Positions 6,184 to 48,160 of a stretch of 64,000 nucleotides of DNA are shown here, piece by piece. How positions within the stretch are numbered: the first letter of the stretch is position 1; every line of letters begins with the position of its first letter. This DNA is from Thalia democratica (taxonomy: Eukaryota), in assembly GCA_965202585.1 (NCBI GenBank), contig OZ241829.1, positions 73,408,001-73,472,000 of the forward strand, read 5' to 3'. Under the pieces are notes generated by a model. That model saw only the letters and a list, made by a program, of their open reading frames with translations. It was not told where the DNA came from and searched no databases. The position numbers and the translations under genes were made by a program.

Positions 6184-6278
6184 TTGGAGTTTTTGCTAGG
6201 TTCGCAATTTTCAGCATTGATGTCAGCCTAAGAGGTCGTTTCTCGTTTTTCTTTCTCAAAAGTAGCATCTCCGTCCAA
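6184..6278 (-). other. Candidate non-coding exon (S1 family), 95 nt
   Basis: Minus strand TTTTTTCAACAG|TTGGACGG...CTCCAA|GTAAGT. Confidence 0.6.
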
Positions 6279-7261
6279 CTGTTGAAAAAATAAATTGAAC
6301 ATTTATTCAAATCAAGATTTTAATCATACTATTAATGAGTTTTGCGTATTTTGCTTTATAAATAGTTTAGCATTGCTGTTTACACCTACAGTTAAAGTTA
6401 TGTTTATTTATTTTTATGACTTGACTACTGAAGCTACTTTTCAGATTTTTTTAAAAATAGACTAAAACTAAATAAAAATAAATATATAACTATCGGATTT
6501 TTTTACTCAATAATTATTCTTCTTTATTAATTAAAAAAATGAAGTGATAATAAAAGATCTACCACACGATCAGCTTATTAACAAACAAGTCTTATTATAA
6601 ACTATTAAATTTTTCGACTTAAGCTGTTTTAGAATTAACAACTTTGGAATCTTAATAACTTATCAAATTTTACTTCAAGCTAAAGTATTTTTAAGCTTTT
6701 AAAGCTTTAAGCTAAGTATATTTATAAAGTTTTTTTGTACAAAAAACGTTCAGTATCCAAAGTTCTTAATTTTTAAATCAAACTATTCGAAGAGTTAAAG
6801 GTCATCAATTTGCTATATAAAAACTAAGTATGGTTGTTTGATCTTAACTGAGTACACTAAAGTAATCAATTTGCTTTAATTTTTTTTTTGAAAAAAAAAC
6901 TATAACGGTTAATACAACTGTAGATAAACATGTTAAATAATATGAATTTAAAAAAAAAGGTTTTGATCAAGAGTTCAAAAGACATGTGGACCCAGAAAAG
7001 AACAAGTTTTTTATTTTAAGTTTATTTTATTTACTTAAAATAAATTGCCATTTTTTGGTTAGTATGCGTATCTAATGAAAATTTTACTGTATCTACGTCA
7101 AAATAACATATAAACTGTTAAAAATAAGATAGAAAAGCGTTTAGGAGTCGGAATTAACTTTTCTGCAGTCAACATTACGGTAGCTAAAATAAAAAAAAAT
7201 TGGCGTCTGAAAACGGTATAGGATAAAATCACACAACCGAAAACTGCCACAGGCAAAACCT

Positions 7262-7510
7262 GTTAGATGACCTCACAAGATGAGTTTAGCAGGTAAAGAT
7301 TCCAAGAATGAAAACATTTTAGTCGTGTTCGAGACGACTTTGAAATTGAGCGTAAATTTGTTAGAATCGGTCAATGCACTTACTGGTGCTGATAATTTGT
7401 ATCTATTTTAATTTTAAGCAAGAGTGCTTGTTAGTTTTTTAATATTACGTCATTAAAAATGAGAGATAAACTTGAGCAAACCGTAAAAACTTGAGAGAGC
7501 TGTTTTTTAC
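7262..7510. promoter_or_regulatory. X module (X2 subtype)
   Basis: TGACCTCACAA, palindrome AGTCGT-N7-ACGACT, right TTACGTCA and TTGAGAG...T-run. Confidence 0.55.
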
Positions 7511-8734: not shown

Positions 8735-10300
8735 AAACTTAACCCTCAAACTGGGAAGCTCGAAGGTCGTAGCATGAGTTGTGGTATGAATACTCAAAGT
8801 GTCAGTAATAAAAGAAAAACTTTTATTGTAAGGAACGAGTTTCTTCTTTTAAGGTTGACATTGCAACTTTTAAAGAACACTCGTTGCTGGTCTACGATAA
8901 ATAGAGAAAACTATTTTAACTTTCTATAGTAACATAAAAATGCAGATCACGGAATGGAAAACTGCGACCCGCGATAATATAAATGTGACCCAAAAAACTA
9001 ATCACAAATCAAATTTACGTTTTCTGTAAAAAAATAATAGCTTGAATTTATTTCAGTATGCTTTTTTATTGTTTACAATAATGAGCATAAGCAATCATTT
9101 GTTTTTTTTAAATTATGAGTTTGTTACAAATTTAACTGAGGTTTGATAAGGTTTCTACTTTAGCTGAAGTTCGACGTGACATCGAACCAACATGTGCCAA
9201 ATATTAAAGATACAGTCGGAGTTCGACATCTCAATTGTCATTGCTATTATTCTCTTAATGTTAGGTAAATTTAAAAGACTTGTATCGCGGTACGGAATGA
9301 CCACTTACAAAATAAAGAACTATTGTGACATCACAAAGTCCGCAGCGAAATTACCGTAAAGCTTTATAGTCAAAGATACAATCATATTAAGCAATTTCAA
9401 ATGGATTTAAGAATTCTTCATGTGTTGAAAAACAAACTCAAACAATGCATTTCAACAAGAATCATTGAACGCAATTTGTATTGTGAAGGCAAACGATAGC
9501 TGGCTTAAAGGAAAACATTGCAACTCTTATGGTACACACTTTGCTGGTTTACAGTAAGTAAGAGAATTTTTTTTCAATTTTTAATGGTGTGATAAGAATG
9601 TAGTTCACGGAATGGAAAACTGTGACCCGCGATAATATAAATGTGACCGAAAAAACTAATCAAAAATTAAATTGGTCTCTTTGTAAAAAATGACGGCTTG
9701 AATTTATTGCAATTCGCTTTTTTATTGTTTACAATAGTGAGCATAAGCGATCATTTATTTCGTTAGGTCATGAATTTGTTACAAACTCAACTGAGGTATA
9801 AAGAGATCGCTAATATAAATGAAGTTTGACGTGACATCGAACGAATACGTGCCAGTTCGACATCTCAATTGTCATTGCTATTTTTTCTCTTAATAAATAG
9901 TTAATTTAAAAGACTCGTAACGCGGTACGGAATGACCACTTAGAAAATATAGAGCTACTATGACGTCACCAGTAGTGCAAAAAAAACGTGACATCGCAAT
10001 TCATTTTCGCTTTACAAATCAAAGTCCGAAGCGAAATCACCGTAAAGCTTAATAGTCAACTATACAATCATATTAAGCCATTTCAAATGGCTGTAAAAAT
10101 TCTTCATTTGTTGAAAAACAAACTCAAGCATTGCACTTTAACAAGACTCATTGAACCCAATTTGTATTGTGAAGGCAAACGATTGCTGGCTTAAAGGTTA
10201 ACATTGCAACTCTTATGGAACACACTTTGTTGGTCTACGGTAAATTAGAAAAAGTTATTCTAACTTTCTACGGAGTTTCATAGGAGTTTTTCGGCTTTTT
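8735..10300. repeat. Three tandem X-containing subrepeats (~640 bp period)
   Basis: AACATTGCAACT...GCTGGT(C/T)TAC and CGGAATGGAAAACTG(C/T)GACCCGCGATAATATAAATGTGACC recur; copy B has two units. Confidence 0.8.
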
Positions 10301-10588
10301 GTTTGAGATTTAATCTATAAGGTTGTTTAAACTTAACTGTATTAGAAGTCTGTTTATACTTTTAAAATTTATTTTCTAGTAAAAATAAGGTATCTTTTAT
10401 AATACTCTCAATTACTAAATAAGCTCGAGGGATGTGGAGTTTTGTAGCTTTTTTATTGTGTTTTGTCTTTTTTCAGATAGTTCAGTATTTACAAATAAAT
10501 AAATAAATTATTTTTTTGCACCTTACAAGAAATTTTTCGCAAGACTAGAATATAACATGAAAGAAACATTTGACAAAACCGCACCAAC

Positions 10589-10704
10589 CTGGCATCTGCA
10601 GAAGCGATTGCAGCGTACGCCTAGGACTCCATCTCATTGACCACCTACCTCAGCAGCGCCTTCAAGTGGTTTTTGTCTGGTTGCTGTTACAATACCACCG
10701 AAAT
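10589..10704 (-). pseudogene. Disrupted paralog of the acidic mini-exon
   Basis: Homologous to 10918-11056, with a 4-nt insertion (GTAG) and an in-frame TAG; flanked by TTCTTACAG and GTTGGT. Confidence 0.45.
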
Positions 10705-10917
10705 CTGTAAGAAAATACTTAATTATATAAACTGACTTTAAGTTTAAGTGAGTTAGGGGAAATCAGTTAATATTTTAAAAATTTCTAACAAGAACACCAC
10801 ACGTCACCACTGGCACTGACAAAATCTTACCTAGATCATTTTAGCTTCTGTGCACCACAAAACACTTTTTGTATACCACTTGGTGTAGTTAAGAAAACAT
10901 ACAAAAAATGCACTAAC

Positions 10918-11039
10918 CTTGCATCTGCAGCAGCAATTTCAGTCTGCGAGGGATCCATTTCATCGACCACCTCTGTAGCGCCTTCAAGTGGCTCGTCTGG
11001 TTTCTGGATGTCGCCGTTCATGTCAGTTGCAACTTTCAT
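10918..11039 (-). CDS. Possible small acidic protein exon MKVATDMNGDIQKPDEPLEGATEVVDEMDPSQTEIAAADA
   Basis: GC-rich; acceptor TTCTAACAG at 11057, donor GCAAG|GTTAGT; frame kept in the paralog at 40335-40462; no family recognised. Confidence 0.3.
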
Positions 11040-11504
11040 ACCACCCTTCAGATAGACTGTTAGAAATCATTTATTTTAAAGAACTTACTACAAATTTAAA
11101 ACAAAAATAATAATTTATTTTATATAGCCTTGGCTATAGGTTACGGTTTTGCTGTTCAGACAAATACAATAACTTTTAAATGCAATCAGTCCTCGTTATA
11201 AGTATCTTTACTCAAAATTGAAATTTAATTAACTTAAGTTGAAATTTAAATACTTTTTGATCAAATTACAGTTTTAGTTTTGTTCATTGCTTAATTAAAT
11301 AAAATTGTATACAAAAAATAGTAGGTAAAGTAGTATTGTGTTTTAAAATAAATTAATTTTTATCAGTATTATAATTCAATAATTTCAATAATAAAAACTA
11401 ATTAAATTAAAGGTTGCAGTTTAGTTTTGTTTACGAAATCGCATGACTTGAAATTTCACAAAACTTTTAACGTTCAACGGAAAGTCGGCTTAGAAAACAA
11501 AGAG

Positions 11505-11810
11505 TCAATGTGTCATTTCAATAAAAAATAAATAAAAAGTCTCGTAACAGTTCACTTTCGCTTCACCAGCAAAGTTCGAAGCGAATTCACCGAAAGACTT
11601 AGAAATCAAAGATACATTCATTTCAAGCCATCTTAAATGGCTGTAAAATTAAGCAAATTACGAGGATAAACAAGAATACTCTTCGACTAGACACTCTGAA
11701 CCCAATATGTGCTGTGAAAGCGAGTGTTTTCCGCACTCGGCCTGTGATGTAATACTTAAATACAGACTTGTTTGTGACGTAAAAATTTGAGAGCTTCTTT
11801 TTTCTATGTG
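11505..11810. promoter_or_regulatory. X module
   Basis: Stem TTCGCTTC/GAAGCGAA, AGCCAT-N5-ATGGCT, right degenerate CRE pair and TTTGAGAG-T6. Confidence 0.65.
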
Positions 11811-15215: not shown

Positions 15216-16119
15216 CTGTTGAAAAAATAAATTGAACATTTATTCAAATAAATATTTTAATCATACTAACAATTAGTTTTGCGTTTTTAGCTATATAATT
15301 AGTTTAGAATTGTCGTTTAAACCTACAATTAAAGTTATGTTAATTTATTTTTATGACTTGACTACTAAAGCTACTTTTCAGAATTATTTCAAAAAAAAAA
15401 CTAATACATAATAGTATAGGATAATTCTTACTAAAGTGATAATAAAAGATCTACCACACGATCAGCTTATTAACAAACAACACTTATTATAAACTATTGA
15501 AATTTTTCGAATGAAGTTGTTTTATAACTAAAAACTTTTGTATCTAAACAACTTATCAAATTTTACTTCAAGCTGAAGTATTTTTGACGTTACAAAAACT
15601 TTCAGTATCTAAAGTTTTTTATTAGTAAACCATGATAGTCGAAGAGTTAACGGTCATCAATTTGCTATATAAAAAAACTAAGTATGGTTGTTTGATCTTA
15701 ACTGAAAACACCGAAGTATTCTATTTGCTCTATTTATTTTTTTAATGAAAATGAGAACGGTTAATACAATTGAAGATAAACGTATTGAATAACATGACTT
15801 TATAAAAAAATGTTTTGATCAAGAGTTTAAAAGACTTATAGATCCAAAAAGAATAAGTTTTTTTTGAAAAGATTATTTTATTTACTTAAAATAAATTGCA
15901 TTTTTTTCGGTTAATATGCGTATCTAATGAAAATTTTACTGTAACTTCGTCACAATAACATATAAACTGTTAAAAACAAGATAGAAAAGCGTTTAGGAGT
16001 CGGAATTAACTTTTCTGCAGTCAACACTGCGGTAGCTAAAATGAGAAAAAAATAGCGTAAGAAAACGGTATAGGAGAAAACCACACAATTGAAAACTGCC
16101 TGTCACAGGCGAAACCTAT

Positions 16120-16355
16120 CAGATAACCTCACAATACGACTTTAGCAGGTTAAGATTTCAAGAATGAAAATATTGTAGTCGTGTTCGAGACGACTTTGAA
16201 ATTTAGCGTTGATTTGTTGGTATCAGTCGATGCACTTACTGGCGCTGATGATTATATATATTTTCATATTAGTCAAGAGTGCTTGTTAGTTTTTTAATAT
16301 TACGTCATTAAAAATGAGAGATAAAGTTGGGGAAGCGTAAAAACTTGAGAGAGCT
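16120..16355. promoter_or_regulatory. X module (X2 subtype)
   Basis: Paralog of 7262-7510 with identical GTCGTGTTCGAGACGAC. Confidence 0.55.
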
Positions 16356-18884: not shown

Positions 18885-19330
18885 GCTCAGCCGAACTCTA
18901 GAGCCTTAAAAATATATACAACAACGTCAGTTTCAATAAAGCGAGTAATTTGCAAATTACTGCTATAATATTCGTACAAGTTTGTTTCGTTTGGACTTTT
19001 TCTAACAAACATATTAACAAAGTAAAACCAACAGTTTATTGAACAAAAACGAAAATGCACAAAAAGTTTTGGTTTAACTACCTGCGTATACGAAAACCTC
19101 TCGGTCGTAGAGTCGTACACGACATTTAGTGTTTTGAACTGTTAAAAAGTATTTGTAGTCATGCTAGATGACTTTAAAAATTCATTAGTTAGAAGTACTT
19201 AGCAGCAAGGTTGAGATTATAATACAACTTGAAAATATTTTTTATTAAAAGCGCTATATTGTTGGATTTAGTTAGTGACGTCATAAAATATAACAACTGT
19301 TTTATGATGATGAATTTTTGACAGTTGCTT
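18885..19330. promoter_or_regulatory. X module (X4 subtype)
   Basis: AGTCAT-N5-ATGACT about 98 nt left of TGACGTCA (19276); right flank homologous to that of the 11.8 kb and 48.1 kb modules. Confidence 0.5.
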
Positions 19331-30349: not shown

Positions 30350-30820
30350 TGAGCTCAGCCGAACTCTAGAGGATTAAAGTAAACCTTAAAAATATATACA
30401 ACAACGTTAGTTTCAATAAAGCGAGTAATTTGCAATTAACTGCTATTATATTCGTACAAGCTTGTTTCGTTTTGACTTTTTCTAACAAACATATTAACAA
30501 ACTAAAACCAACAGTTTATTGAACAAAAAACGAAAATGCTCGAAAAGTTTTGATTTAACTACCTAAGTGTACGAAAACTTCTCGGTCATTGAGTCGTACA
30601 CGAATTAAGTGTTTTGAGCTGTTAACAAGTATTTATAGTCATGCTAGATGACTTTAAAGATTCACCAGTTAGAAGTAATAAGAAGCAAGGTTGAAGAGTT
30701 GTAACAATTTGAATTTAACTATTTTTTGAAAGCGCTATATTGTTTGAGTTAGTTAGTGACGTCATGATAAATTATACTTAATTATGACGTTAAATTTTGA
30801 GTCTTGCCTTTTTTTTTTTA
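30350..30820. promoter_or_regulatory. X module (X4)
   Basis: AGTCATGCTAGATGACT; TGACGTCA at 30757 and TGACGTTA downstream. Confidence 0.5.
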
Positions 30821-37974: not shown

Positions 37975-38235
37975 ATTATGACGTCACGCGTAACACGATA
38001 AAGTTTTTGTTACGTCACAATTCACTTTTGCCAACCAACCGTAGTTCGAAGCGGAATCACCGAAAAGTTTCGAAGTTAAAAATGAATTAGTTTTAAGTCA
38101 TGTGGAATGACTGTTAAAAGTGTTCAGCAACGAGGCTACAAATTGAATCAATGCAAGCCAACTTTAAAAGTTTAAATTTGCTCAATCGCTCTGAAGCAAC
38201 ATATGTGCTCTTAAAATAGAAATTTGCAGAATTTT
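37975..38235. promoter_or_regulatory. X module
   Basis: TGACGTCA (37979) / TTACGTCA (38010), GTTCGAAGCGGAATCACCG, AGTCAT-N5-ATGACT. Confidence 0.65.
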
Positions 38236-40050: not shown

Positions 40051-40334
40051 CTATTTGATTGAGATTAAATCTATAAGGTTGTTTAAACTTAACTGTATAA
40101 GAAGTCTGTTTATATTTTTAAAATTTATTTTCTAGTAAAAATAATGTGTCCTTTATAATACTCTTAATTGAAAAATAAGCTCGAGGGATGTAGAGTTTTG
40201 TAGCTTTTTTATTGTTTTTGTCTATTTTTAGATATTTCAGTATTTATAAGCAAAGTAACAAATTATTTTTTGTGCACCTTACAAGAAATTTTTCGCAAGA
40301 CATTAAAAGAAGCATTTGACAAAAACGCACTGAC

Positions 40335-40462
40335 CTAACATCATCTTCAGCAATTGCAGCATACGCCTGCGAGGAATCCATCTCATCGACCACCTCTGTA
40401 GCGCCTTCAAGTGGCTCGTATAGTTGCTGAATGTCTCCGTTCATTTTGGTTGCAACTTTCAT
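40335..40462 (-). CDS. Possible small acidic protein exon MKVATKMNGDIQQLYEPLEGATEVVDEMDSSQAYAAIAEDDV
   Basis: Acceptor TTCTAACAG at 40480, donor GTTAG|GTCAGT; same frame as 10918-11039. Confidence 0.3.
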
Positions 40463-40964
40463 ACCACCGTTCAGATAGACTGTTAGAAATCATTTATTTT
40501 AAAAAGTTTACTATAAATTTAAAACAAAAGTGTTTATTTTATTTTATATAGCCTTTGATTTAGGTGACATTTTTGCTGTTCAGACAAATACAATAAATTT
40601 CAAATGCAATCTGTTCTCGTTAAAAGTATCTCTAGTTAAAAATAAAATTTAATTGACTTATTATAAATATTTTTTGATCAAATTGCAGTTTTAGCTTTGT
40701 TCATTGATTAATTAAAAAATAAAGTTATTTACAAACAATAATAGGTAAAGTAGTATTGTGTTTAAAAACAGTTTAACTTTTATAAGTATTATAATTCAAT
40801 AATTTCATTAATTAAAACTAACGAAATTAACGGTTGCAATTTATTTTTGTTTACGAAACCGCATGACTTGTAAATTTTTACACTTGTAAATTTTTCTTTT
40901 ACATTTTAAAAGACTTTTAACGTTTAACGGAAAGTCGGCTAATAGAAAACAAAAAGTCAATGTG

Positions 40965-41265
40965 ACTTCAATGACTACATAAAACAATAAAGTCTCGTCA
41001 CAACTCACTTTCGTTTCACTAGCTGGAGTTCGAGGCGAATTCACCGAAAGACTTAGAAATCAAAGATACATTCATTTTAAGCCATCTTGAATGGCTGTTA
41101 AAATAAGCAAATAACGAGGATAAACAAGAATACTCTTCGACTAGACACTCTAAACCCAATTTGTGCTGTGAAAGCGAGTATTTTCCGCACTCGGCCTATG
41201 ACGTAATACTTAAATACAGACTTGTTTGTGACGTAAAAATTTGAGAGCTGCTTTTTTCTATGTGT
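40965..41265. promoter_or_regulatory. X module
   Basis: Paralog of 11505-11810. Confidence 0.65.
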
Positions 41266-45797: not shown

Positions 45798-47879
45798 CTG
45801 TTGAACAAAAATTGAATATTTATTCGAATAAAGATTTTAATCATACTATTAATGAGTTTTGCGTATTTTGCTTTATAAATAGTTTAGCATTGCCGTTTAA
45901 ACCTACAGTTAAAGTTTTGTTTTTTTTTTTTATGACTTGATTACTGAAGCTACTTTTCGGAACTATTCAAAAAAAAACTAAAAACACATAATAGTATTGA
46001 ACAATCTTACTAAATAGTTAGTTTTCTTTATTTAAAAATATTGATAAAAAAATGAAGTGATAATAAAAGATTTACCACACGATCAGCTTATTAACAAACA
46101 ACTCTTATTATAAACTATTAAAATTTTTTGACTAAAGTTGTTTTATAATTAACAACTTTGGAATCTAAGCAACTTATCAAATTTTACTTCAAACTGAAGT
46201 ACTTTTGACGTTACAAAAAACGTTCAGTATAAACGTTCAGTAAAATATAATGAATTTTATTATCAAGTAATTTTAAATGTTTTTTTAATGCTTAATAATA
46301 CTTATTATATGAATATTTTTTTTTAATTTTTCTTAATCTTTTTTTTGTCTCATTTTGTAGTACAGTTTGACAAAATCAAAAGGCTTTATTATCTACATTT
46401 TTAATAAACCAAGCCTTAAAAAAACTAAGTTTCAAAAAAGTGGGTTGACAAGAACACAATGATAAGTAAGTAGCTCTGTGTAAAAAGTTTAAAGCCATTT
46501 TTTATTTTTAGCATCATTTATTTTATCTGCTTCTTAATAAAAAGTTACTATCTTAAATGCATATTTTATAATACTTTAATGATATGCTTAAACTTACTCA
46601 CTACATATATAAAATTATGAAAAGTTATTTTGATGTTTTATTTTAATCAGTCTTTAAATGCTTTACTCTATACTTGAGCTATGACAAAGAGTATAATAAA
46701 AACATAAGCCATTAAGCCTGAAACACGTTTAGATTAGCCTCAGTGATATCTATTATTACAAGTAATGTTTATTATTACATGTTATTGTAACAATTTTGTA
46801 TGCTGCTTCTGACATAGTATACATAAATATAGTTTTTTTTTTGTAACATTTATAAAGTATCATTGTTACAAAGTAGTAGTAAGATAAATAAAGAACTTTT
46901 TTCAAACCTTTATTTCGTTCTAAAAACAAATATCAACTGGTAAACTAATTTCATATTATTAGTTTAAGCTTGTAGTTTTAAAGATCGCATTCTTGTGTAC
47001 AGTTATTGATAGATATATGCGCTAGGATAATAATTTATACTAAATAATTTATTACTGCAGTTCTTGTTGTCATAGTTTAAGTTTTTATTCTTTTTAGTTT
47101 GTATAGTAATCTTTTAAAACAAAGTTTGTTTACTACAGCTCATATGAAAAAGACTAGCTTTTATTTTTTGTTTAAACATAACTTAAAAATTTACAGAAAA
47201 CTTTTAAGCTACTAACCGAAATGTTTACACGTCGACTATTTAATTATCACTATTTCATAATTCTCATACATTAACTACTTCATTCGAATGTTACAGGTTT
47301 TTTTTATATGAAATATAAGTACATTTAAATTGAAAACTAATGATAATCTAACTTGTTTTAAAGTGACAAACTATAAAAGTATTTATTTTATGTAAGTTCT
47401 AGAAGCATTTTTTATAGTTTTCTATAATAAAGAATAATGAATAACAAACAAAAACATAAGCAAAGCTTCTGCAATATAAATATTATTATTTAGTTAAAGC
47501 AAAGTTTACATGAACAACAACAAACATTTTAATTATTTTTCTTTTAGTTCATTTATATTAGATTTTCGTCATAATGTTTTAATGGCTAGTCACTTAAACA
47601 AATGTTAAGAACTTGCCTGTCTAGTTAATTTAAAAACATTTATCATATTAATTTGCTTGGAATAGACAAAATATTTTTTGTAGTAAAAATACTTAAAAGT
47701 AAAACAGTATCATAACAAAACAAAATTAAATTTATACTTGACATTTTAAGTTTAAAACTTATATCTTCGAGGAAAATGTTTATATTTAACAACTGCATTT
47801 GAGTTGTTTTGTTATAAGCGAATGGTCAAAAAACTTCACAGCACTCTCGGCACGATAGGAGAGAAGAGAGCAAATAACT

Positions 47880-48160
47880 GTTGTGACGTCACAGTTCAAA
47901 GTTGCTTCACAAGTCGATGTCCGAGGCGAAAGCACGGAAAGCTTACAAGTCAATGATGAATTGATTTTAAGTCATGTTAATAACGACTGTCAAATAGAAG
48001 GGCACTATGAAGTTGTAGCAGTATCTACTACTTTAACTTGACAACAACTGAACCTAATTTGTATTGTGATAGTCAGAAGTTGCTGCGTTCAAGTTGTGAC
48101 GTCACCAAAAGCTACTACTATCAATATGACATAACATTTTGAGAGTTTCTTTTTTAAGTT
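47880..48160. promoter_or_regulatory. X module with perfect GTGACGTCAC at both ends
   Basis: TGACGTCA at 47884 and 48097; stem TTGCTTC/GAGGCGA; central AGTCAT-N7-ACGACT; TTTTGAGAG-T run. Confidence 0.65.

Follow-up and report, generated by a model that had tools for sequence, protein, structure and literature searches.

The stretch of DNA analysed here, hereafter the window, covers 64,000 nt of the Thalia democratica genome (C5:73408001-73472000; host genome 801 Mb, 29% GC). It contains hardly any long open reading frames and is composed of segmental duplications. An exact match to the 16-nt spliced leader of Ciona, with GT after it, is found at no fewer than 100 places in the genome, in agreement with a tunicate host. 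One repeated module of the window, which includes positions 11505 to 11810 and is named X here, had been described in an earlier note as a dyad, with a pair of sites resembling the cAMP response element (CRE) on either side of a central palindrome. Members of the X family were found by iterated nhmmer searches and later with a covariance model. Left and right are given in the plus-strand view, the right side being upstream in the minus sense, and single units are named by their position in kb. We propose that the central palindrome, called H2 below, is the stem-loop of an RNA made from a small non-coding gene that lies on the minus strand and has its own promoter. Judged from the sequence, this reading stands at an even balance of probability. 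It is carried by the compensatory changes in the H2 stem, by the single polarity of the array, and by the resemblance of the right flank to the promoters of the host's own U1 and U6 genes.

Eight perfect palindromes are present in the window, at 7321, 10076, 11626, 16177, 19157, 30637, 38096 and 41080, together with an imperfect one at 47970; all those listed in the earlier note were recovered. The degenerate pattern AGYCRT-N5/N7-AYGRCT matches nine times, six with N5 and three with N7, against 0.02 matches expected from shuffles. The perfect octamer TGACGTCA occurs 35 times (0.44 expected), and TTGAGAG nine times on the plus strand and once on the minus strand. Iterated nhmmer found nine X copies in the window, in one shared orientation. 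With the covariance model there are 12 strong copies, 12/12 on the minus strand, and about five related cassettes besides, fewer than the approximately 23 X copies counted before. The model reaches the 7.3/16.2 and 19.2 kb units at E values of about 0.1-0.2 only, again on the minus strand. Together with the 30.6 kb unit, these form two near-identical segmental-duplicate pairs (7.3/16.2 and 19.2/30.6 kb) from other cassette families, which share the same grammar of a CRE, about 103 nt, a U-tract and a hairpin. The three stem variants noted earlier thus exist, but they are not three states of one aligned family, because the units of these two pairs belong elsewhere. Overall, 39/39 strong model hits are co-oriented within the array. 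X copies located about 0.5-0.9 Mb upstream of the window (L009-L011, C5:72.56-72.92 Mb) are chromosomally inverted, so that the array has two inverted arms. A transposon or miniature inverted-repeat transposable element was considered and rejected: no terminal repeats were seen, and the copies are co-oriented in one array of about 1.1 Mb, which together point to tandem or segmental duplication. As for homologues in other species, one pattern scan of a metagenome gave five chance matches, on bacterial-type contigs without CREs.

The covariation of the H2 stem is real. It was measured in two alignments. Alignment A1 holds 33 homologues without overlap, taken from the window and from loci across C5:72.56-73.67 Mb and aligned with MAFFT in the minus-strand sense of the window. 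Alignment A4 holds 39 copies from about 1.1 Mb of chromosome, aligned to the covariance model R1. Two controls that keep the shared ancestry of the copies were used, namely pairing partners slid along the alignment and 1,270 pairs of other variable columns of the same alignment. In A1, 87.9% of the H2 cells are paired versus 74.5% after shuffling (0/500 shuffles as high), and pairing falls to 30-43% when the partners are slid by one to three columns. Cells with changes on both sides number 42 where 15.1 are expected, and such two-sided changes are present at 6/6 H2 pairs. The A4 alignment gives 87.6% pairing in H2 (30-50% with slid partners), and 22 further pair types when H2 and the second hairpin H3 are counted jointly, versus 17.9 +/- 1.1 expected (0/500). 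Four of the six H2 pairs are paired in 0.95-0.97 of the copies, a value equalled by 0-1 of the 1,270 control column pairs (mean pairing 0.38, 99th percentile 0.82); the remaining two pairs reach 0.64 and 0.77 by the same comparison. Five fully Watson-Crick stem types are found, AGCCAT, AGTCAT, AGTCGT, AACCGC and CTACAT, each with its complement. They are set apart by at least eight whole-pair replacements, and up to three pairs can differ with pairing still perfect. Several G-U states on the minus strand are the intermediates to be expected between these types; AGTCGT/ATGACT, for example, links AGTCAT/ATGACT with AGTCGT/ACGACT. The compensatory variation proposed in the earlier note survives the phylogeny-preserving controls, and so does not dissolve once common descent is allowed for. 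From this comparison of copies, selection acts on the pairing and not on the sequence. H2 is not a dimeric DNA-binding site either, because such a site would keep its sequence and conserved half-sites are not found here: 6/6 stem positions change. The features of the main units are given in Table 1.

Table 1. Positions of the elements of X units and related cassettes in the window (plus-strand numbering).
Feature	Position	Strand	Remarks
Upstream promoter element of the 11.6-kb unit, A-run + CTCTCAA	11787..11803	-	plus strand: TTGAGAG + T-run
Distal CRE-like octamer TTACGTCA, right pair	11775..11782	-	22 nt from proximal octamer
Proximal CRE-like octamer TTACATCA	11745..11752	-	at the proximal sequence element position of an snRNA-type promoter
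TTGGGT box	11695..11707	-	starts +40 from proximal CRE; conserved in X copies
Predicted transcription start	11677	-	U1 spacing transferred; as in U1, an A that follows GT
U-rich tract directly 5' of H2, UUAAUUUUAC	11643..11652	-	resembles Sm site
Central palindrome H2 of the 11.6-kb unit, read as RNA hairpin	11626..11642	-	6-bp stem, 5-nt loop
Second hairpin H3, TTCGCTTC / GAAGCGAA	11557..11585	-	core shared between families GCUUC / GAAGC; minus strand tentative
Left CRE pair of the 11.6-kb module	11509..11547	unassigned	both degenerate: TCTCGTAA 11540-11547, TGTGTCAT 11509-11516
H2 of the 10.1-kb copy	10076..10092	-	
Intact left CRE pair of the 10.1-kb copy	9961..9996	unassigned	TGACGTCA, 20 nt, TGACATCG
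H2 of the 38.1-kb copy	38096..38112	-	AGTCAT/ATGACT
H2 of the 41.1-kb copy	41080..41096	-	
Best-preserved full unit, 47.9 kb	47875..48146	-	CTCTCAA (plus strand: TTGAGAG at 48139) and TTAGGT box present
Inner CREs of the 47.9-kb unit	right 48097; left 47884	-	
Hairpin of the 47.9-kb unit	47970..47988	-	AGTCGT/ATGACT, one G-U
Hairpin of a separate cassette family	7321..7339	-	duplicate 16177-16195; CRE 105 nt upstream; U-tract; no left CRE pair
Hairpin of a third cassette family	19157..19173	-	duplicate 30637-30653; CRE 102-103 nt upstream; U-tract; no left CRE pair

Read in the minus sense, the right end of X shows an A-run, CTCTCAA, TTACGTCA, 22 nt, TTACATCA and then TTGGGTTCAG starting at +40. 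This is the order of elements in the small nuclear RNA (snRNA) genes of the host. Upstream of the host U1 genes we find CTCTC(T/A), sometimes a distal CRE-like site, and TGACGTCA, with TTGGGTAGCAG starting at +40 and 67 nt from the end of the CRE to the transcription start; two of these genes (L014 and L019) carry the second CRE-like site upstream with a gap of 20 nt. The host U6 genes have an A-run, CTCTC, a CRE and a TATA box, with about 74 nt from the CRE to the start. X shares with U1 the CTCTC(A/T) element, the CRE and the TTGGGT box at +40, the start itself being predicted. The octamer TGACGTCA lies at a fixed proximal position upstream of both the U1 genes, transcribed by RNA polymerase (Pol) II, and the U6 genes, transcribed by Pol III and carrying TATATATA (loci L014-L023 for U1 and L044-L049 for U6), and on this comparison the CRE seems to serve as the proximal sequence element in both. 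The host U1 RNA begins with AAACUUACCUG, with A and not U at position 2.

The polarity of these elements is strict. In the minus sense, 26 occurrences of CTCTCA lie at most 60 nt upstream of a CRE-like site and 0 lie downstream; in the plus sense there are 0 upstream. This one-sidedness fixes the polarity of the whole array, and the TTGAGAG with a T-run described before at the right ends, which we find at five of them (7491, 11787, 16345, 41241 and 48139), is the upstream edge of the promoter seen on the other strand. The spacing is also kept. From the proximal CRE to the start of the hairpin there are 102 nt in 6/6 copies of the 11.6-kb subfamily, and from the inner right CRE to the hairpin 94-110 nt across copies, in line with the right arm of about 100 nt proposed earlier. 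Within this subfamily identity is 0.92-0.96 from promoter to hairpin, about 0.85 in the flanks and 0.63-0.84 in the left CRE region, which is thus the least conserved part of the unit. The right CRE pair, with TTGAGAG and the T-run, would then be the promoter of a mini-gene seen backwards, in the layout of host U1 and U6, the CRE standing in for the proximal sequence element. With the spacing of U1, the start of transcription would lie about 67-68 nt after the inner CRE.

The RNA predicted from such a start would begin with about 35 nt from 11677 to the U-tract, of which the first 25 or so vary freely between copies. No block of the 5' half is better conserved than the U-tract that follows, and the 7.3/16.2 and 19.2/30.6 kb families, which cannot be aligned with X, have it too. 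Its consensus is AUUUU(U/A)A(C/G), with column counts of A34, T29, T38, T35, T32, T24/A12, A37 and C24/G10 in 39 copies. In comparison with the Sm-site consensus RAU(4-6)GR, the expected G is found in some families only (AAUUUGAAG, UAUUUGAC), and the Sm site of the host U1 is itself atypical (AAUUUCUCC). The covarying H2 hairpin adjoins the U-tract without any spacer, as a stem-loop directly 3' of an Sm-like tract. The proposed RNA would therefore consist of a variable 5' segment, a near-invariant U-tract that could bind Sm proteins, and the 6-bp hairpin at once, an order known from U7 and from the 3' domain of Sm-class snRNAs. H3 is paired in 86.5% of cells (39 copies). Several families have a loose AAATG..TTT block after the stem; a 3' box is not definable even for the host U1 genes. 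In diverged families H3 is followed by a CRE-centred palindrome of up to 36 bp, then by a T-run and a second CRE. The RNA could end after the first hairpin, or continue through H3 and the CRE-centred palindrome. (Near-)perfect palindromes of 32-36 bp centred on the left inner CRE were seen at L033:6240-6451, L033:3129-3340 and L041:7389-7600 (C5:73.39-73.62 Mb). Paralogues differ in their outer arms by compensatory changes (CCG/CGG versus AAG/CTT versus TCG/CGA), and in the X copies only the remnant AAAGT...ACTTT is left. The left CRE pair would be a separate downstream element with a two-site spacing of 18-22 nt. Some subfamilies do without it, and it may serve the next unit as its promoter or be a 3' flanking element. 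A tRNA or a tRNA-derived short interspersed element was rejected as the source of the module, as ARAGORN found nothing and the only trace is a GTTCGAA fragment on the plus strand, inside H3.

The stems themselves also bear on the strand. Counted in the minus sense, G-U cells outnumber A-C cells by 22:8 in H2 and 26:15 in H3, a wobble balance that is suggestive of the minus strand. Several observations weigh against the proposed minus-strand RNA, and some of them concern this balance. The ratio is only about 2:1 and the copies are not independent. The lineage with AATCAT/ATAATT and the H3 of the 11.6-kb subfamily have C-A on the minus strand, which corresponds to G-U on the plus strand. Folding energies and z-scores are alike in sense and antisense, and RNAalifold recovered the stem on plus-sense rows only, which we read as a threshold artefact because the arms are self-complementary. 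As to the promoter, a hidden Markov model of the U1 promoter aligned to the window finds the CRE alone, and on both strands, while the TTGGGT box is confined to X. With 3/223 CRE sites carrying it, this box was rejected as a general feature of the cassettes. As to the RNA, most copies of the U-tract lack the G of a canonical Sm site, the module has no Rfam match at the gathering threshold or at E values up to 10, and conservation between subfamilies is highest in the 90 nt or so that follow the hairpin, which a short RNA of U7 size does not explain. Finally, spliced exons lie nearby on the same strand, and the hairpin could sit in a longer transcript.

This last point leads to a rival explanation, in which the hairpin with its U-tract lies in the first intron of a longer spliced, largely non-coding Pol II RNA from the minus strand, driven by the CRE promoter and running from a very short exon 1 to exons of the type that we call S1, and acts as a processing or splicing signal. 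On the minus strand there are thirteen S1 exons with good acceptors and donors, each following a cassette at a distance of between a few hundred and about 1,100 nt. The 11.6-kb unit and its paralogues are followed, after about 600 nt, by an exon that combines acceptor, ATG and donor. Candidate donors for exon 1 also exist, CCTC/GTAATT 19 nt before the hairpin in the 11.6-kb subfamily and CCA/GTAAGT 44 nt before it in the 7.3-kb family. However, neither the position nor the quality of the donor is conserved between subfamilies, the 25-30 nt that precede the hairpin lack any GT in several copies, and the donor of the 7.3-kb family approximately coincides with the predicted start site. The layout of the promoter is moreover that of snRNA genes and unlike that of mRNA genes. 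We therefore consider an intronic hairpin rather unlikely. The S1 family itself comprises 13 paralogues on the minus strand between 2839 and 63590 of the window (for example 6184-6278), with a polypyrimidine-AG acceptor and a GTAAGT donor. This suggests that spliced, probably non-coding transcripts originate in the same array. The exon-like block at 10915-11055 (minus strand) has an acceptor, an open frame of about 40 codons that starts with ATG and is acidic in product, and a GTTAGT donor; its paralogues are located at 10575-10686, 40321-40490 and L032:8316-8482, one being without ATG and another frame-broken. In the 7230-7400 and 16090-16260 regions (minus strand), a sequence that looks like the 5' end of U1, CTTTACCTGC (CTTAACCTGC in the 16.2-kb copy), is present about 30 nt after the hairpin.

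Could the palindrome act as DNA? In a CRE-rich regulatory module it might form a cruciform or a single-strand hairpin, or be a quasi-palindrome kept by template switching. The modules do hold other palindromes that are DNA motifs, the CREs, including the compensatory CRE-centred ones of up to 36 bp, and folding favours neither strand. A stem of 6 bp, on the other hand, is too short for stable cruciform extrusion. Template-switch repair yields Watson-Crick pairs only and predicts no excess of G-T over A-C on one strand, contrary to the 22:8 and 26:15 balances; a protein site would keep its sequence; and the invariant U-tract, present on one side only, is left unexplained. A role at the DNA level is thus improbable.

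The dyad of the earlier note would place the palindrome at the centre of two bZIP-bound CRE pairs, around one nucleosome or between convergent or divergent transcription units. In some copies the palindrome does lie between two CRE pairs, which are about 180-215 bp from each other, and the inner CREs of the 47.9-kb unit, said to be about 200 bp apart, are separated by 213 bp. CREs are palindromic and could in principle fire both ways, and a plus-strand transcript begun 68 nt past the left inner CRE would reach the hairpin after about 12 nt. Nevertheless, the arms are not mirror images. The stem is 61-79 nt from the inner left CRE, and not the approximately 90 nt first given for this arm, compared with 94-110 nt on the right. 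The left arm scores 9-10 against the reverse-complemented right arm, where shuffles score 8 +/- 1.5. The CRE-to-CRE distance differs by about 40 nt between subfamilies, the polarity markers run in one direction (CTCTCA 26 versus 0), and the copies are co-oriented. The flanking CRE pairs, present in some copies, are missing or degenerate on one side in several subfamilies: the left pair is degenerate in the 11.6-kb subfamily and absent from the 7.3/16.2 and 19.2/30.6 kb units, and the right one is replaced in the 10.1-kb subfamily. Where the left pair exists, neither a TTGGGT box nor a TATA is found at the offset expected in the plus sense. The dyad would also leave the compensatory changes without reason. 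The nucleosome and bidirectional-promoter ideas thus fail because the symmetry that they presume is absent, and this arrangement is very improbable. From the interpretations offered in the earlier note the RNA stem fits, whereas the dimeric site, the nucleosome and the bidirectional promoter do not. In the 9.3, 10.1 and 39.8 kb copies (10200-10260 and paralogues) both right CREs are replaced in place, by a TTGCAAT palindrome (C/EBP/PAR-like) and by TACCGTAG. This may reflect the exchange of one bZIP-type site for another, or the decay of these copies.

Finally, that the units are functionless, decaying copies of a tandemly amplified repeat, with covariation from shared ancestry, deserves hardly any credence: copies do lie in near-identical segmental duplications (7.3/16.2 and 19.2/30.6 kb) and several have broken stems or lost CREs, but the ancestry-keeping controls stay far below the observed pairing, stems up to three pairs apart are still perfectly paired, and cassette families that cannot be aligned keep the grammar and the spacing.

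The stem-loop of a small minus-strand gene remains the reading that we prefer. The analysis contributes a well-controlled case of compensatory evolution of a hairpin, with its strand corrected, and resolves the apparent dyad into what would be a promoter, a mini-gene and a non-equivalent second CRE pair in tandem. Provided that the units are transcribed, structured small RNAs that are built on the snRNA transcription machinery, each with its own promoter and a 5' end free to vary, would number in the hundreds to thousands in a chordate genome and would constitute a new class of small RNA genes.

The comparison with known systems begins with the promoter. In vertebrates, the enhancers of snRNA genes contain CRE/ATF sites, and here too a bZIP-type TGACGTCA lies upstream of snRNA genes. 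The host CRE differs in being proximal and fixed (-75 to -68 in U1 and about -82 to -75 in U6), and not distal. The closest RNA for comparison is U7 snRNA, which has about 60 nt with a 5' guide, an Sm site and a 3' hairpin. The likeness of X to U7 and the Sm class lies in the promoter element at a fixed distance, common to host U1 and U6, in the predicted short RNA with a free 5' segment, a U-rich tract and a short terminal-type hairpin, and in the multi-copy, clustered genes. It differs from U7 in its stem of 6 bp only, in 5' segments that vary by copy, and in being followed by about 90 conserved nt that hold further hairpins. U7 itself was rejected as the identity of X: the U7 model (RF00066) has no match in the X region at E values up to 10, its best genome-wide match (E = 0.7) lies elsewhere, and the 5' segments differ.

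In Ciona the spliced leader (SL) RNA is a 46-nt RNA with a 16-nt leader and the Sm-like AGCUUUGG (PMC7986045). X recalls it by its tunicate setting, its short 5' segment, the GU in some copies, the U-tract and the hairpin. In the 11.6-kb subfamily CCUC/GUAAUU falls exactly 16 nt after the predicted start, and the predicted leader starts with ATTCT and is followed by GTAAT. An SL RNA gene was nevertheless rejected for X, in which the donor and the 5' segment are unconserved, the host's real leader being the Ciona sequence, which with GT is encoded elsewhere. The 18 nt of that leader with GT have at least 100 exact sites versus about 0.35 expected, for example at C26:7129-84046 at intervals of 15,085 bp and at C4:80.16-80.42 Mb. 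When up to three mismatches are allowed, the matches exceed those of the reversed control by about 1,270. By their sequence these sites are SL RNA genes and/or leader-tagged retro-copies, and among the exact sites listed none lies in the C5:72.5-73.7 Mb array.

It is a tentative possibility that X represents a very large, lineage-specific family of Sm-class RNAs, U7-like (or SL-like), with their own CRE promoters and with hypervariable 5' ends in front of a fixed handle made of the U-tract and the hairpin. In organisation its counterpart would be found in nematodes, where the 21U-RNA loci (type I PIWI-interacting RNAs, piRNAs) are thousands of clustered mini-genes with an upstream motif derived from the proximal sequence element and bound by SNAPc/USTC (PMC6436959, PMC6317315). 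X likewise has very many tiny units, an snRNA-type upstream element, a location in one chromosome region and a unique 5' segment. The differences are the phylum, the motif (CRE/CTCTCA in X versus the Ruby motif in nematodes), and the conserved hairpins and U-tract of X, which are absent from 21U precursors. Genome matches of two variable 26-nt segments at up to three mismatches are the segments themselves and one paralogue; with no other match, perfect piRNA-like targeting is not supported. If the units are transcribed, they would be the second independent case, after the nematode piRNAs, of snRNA-type promoters multiplied into a huge array of mini-genes. Should the Sm-class reading hold as well, the array would be a chromosome-scale set of guide-like RNAs, the chordate counterpart in organisation to the piRNA clusters of nematodes.

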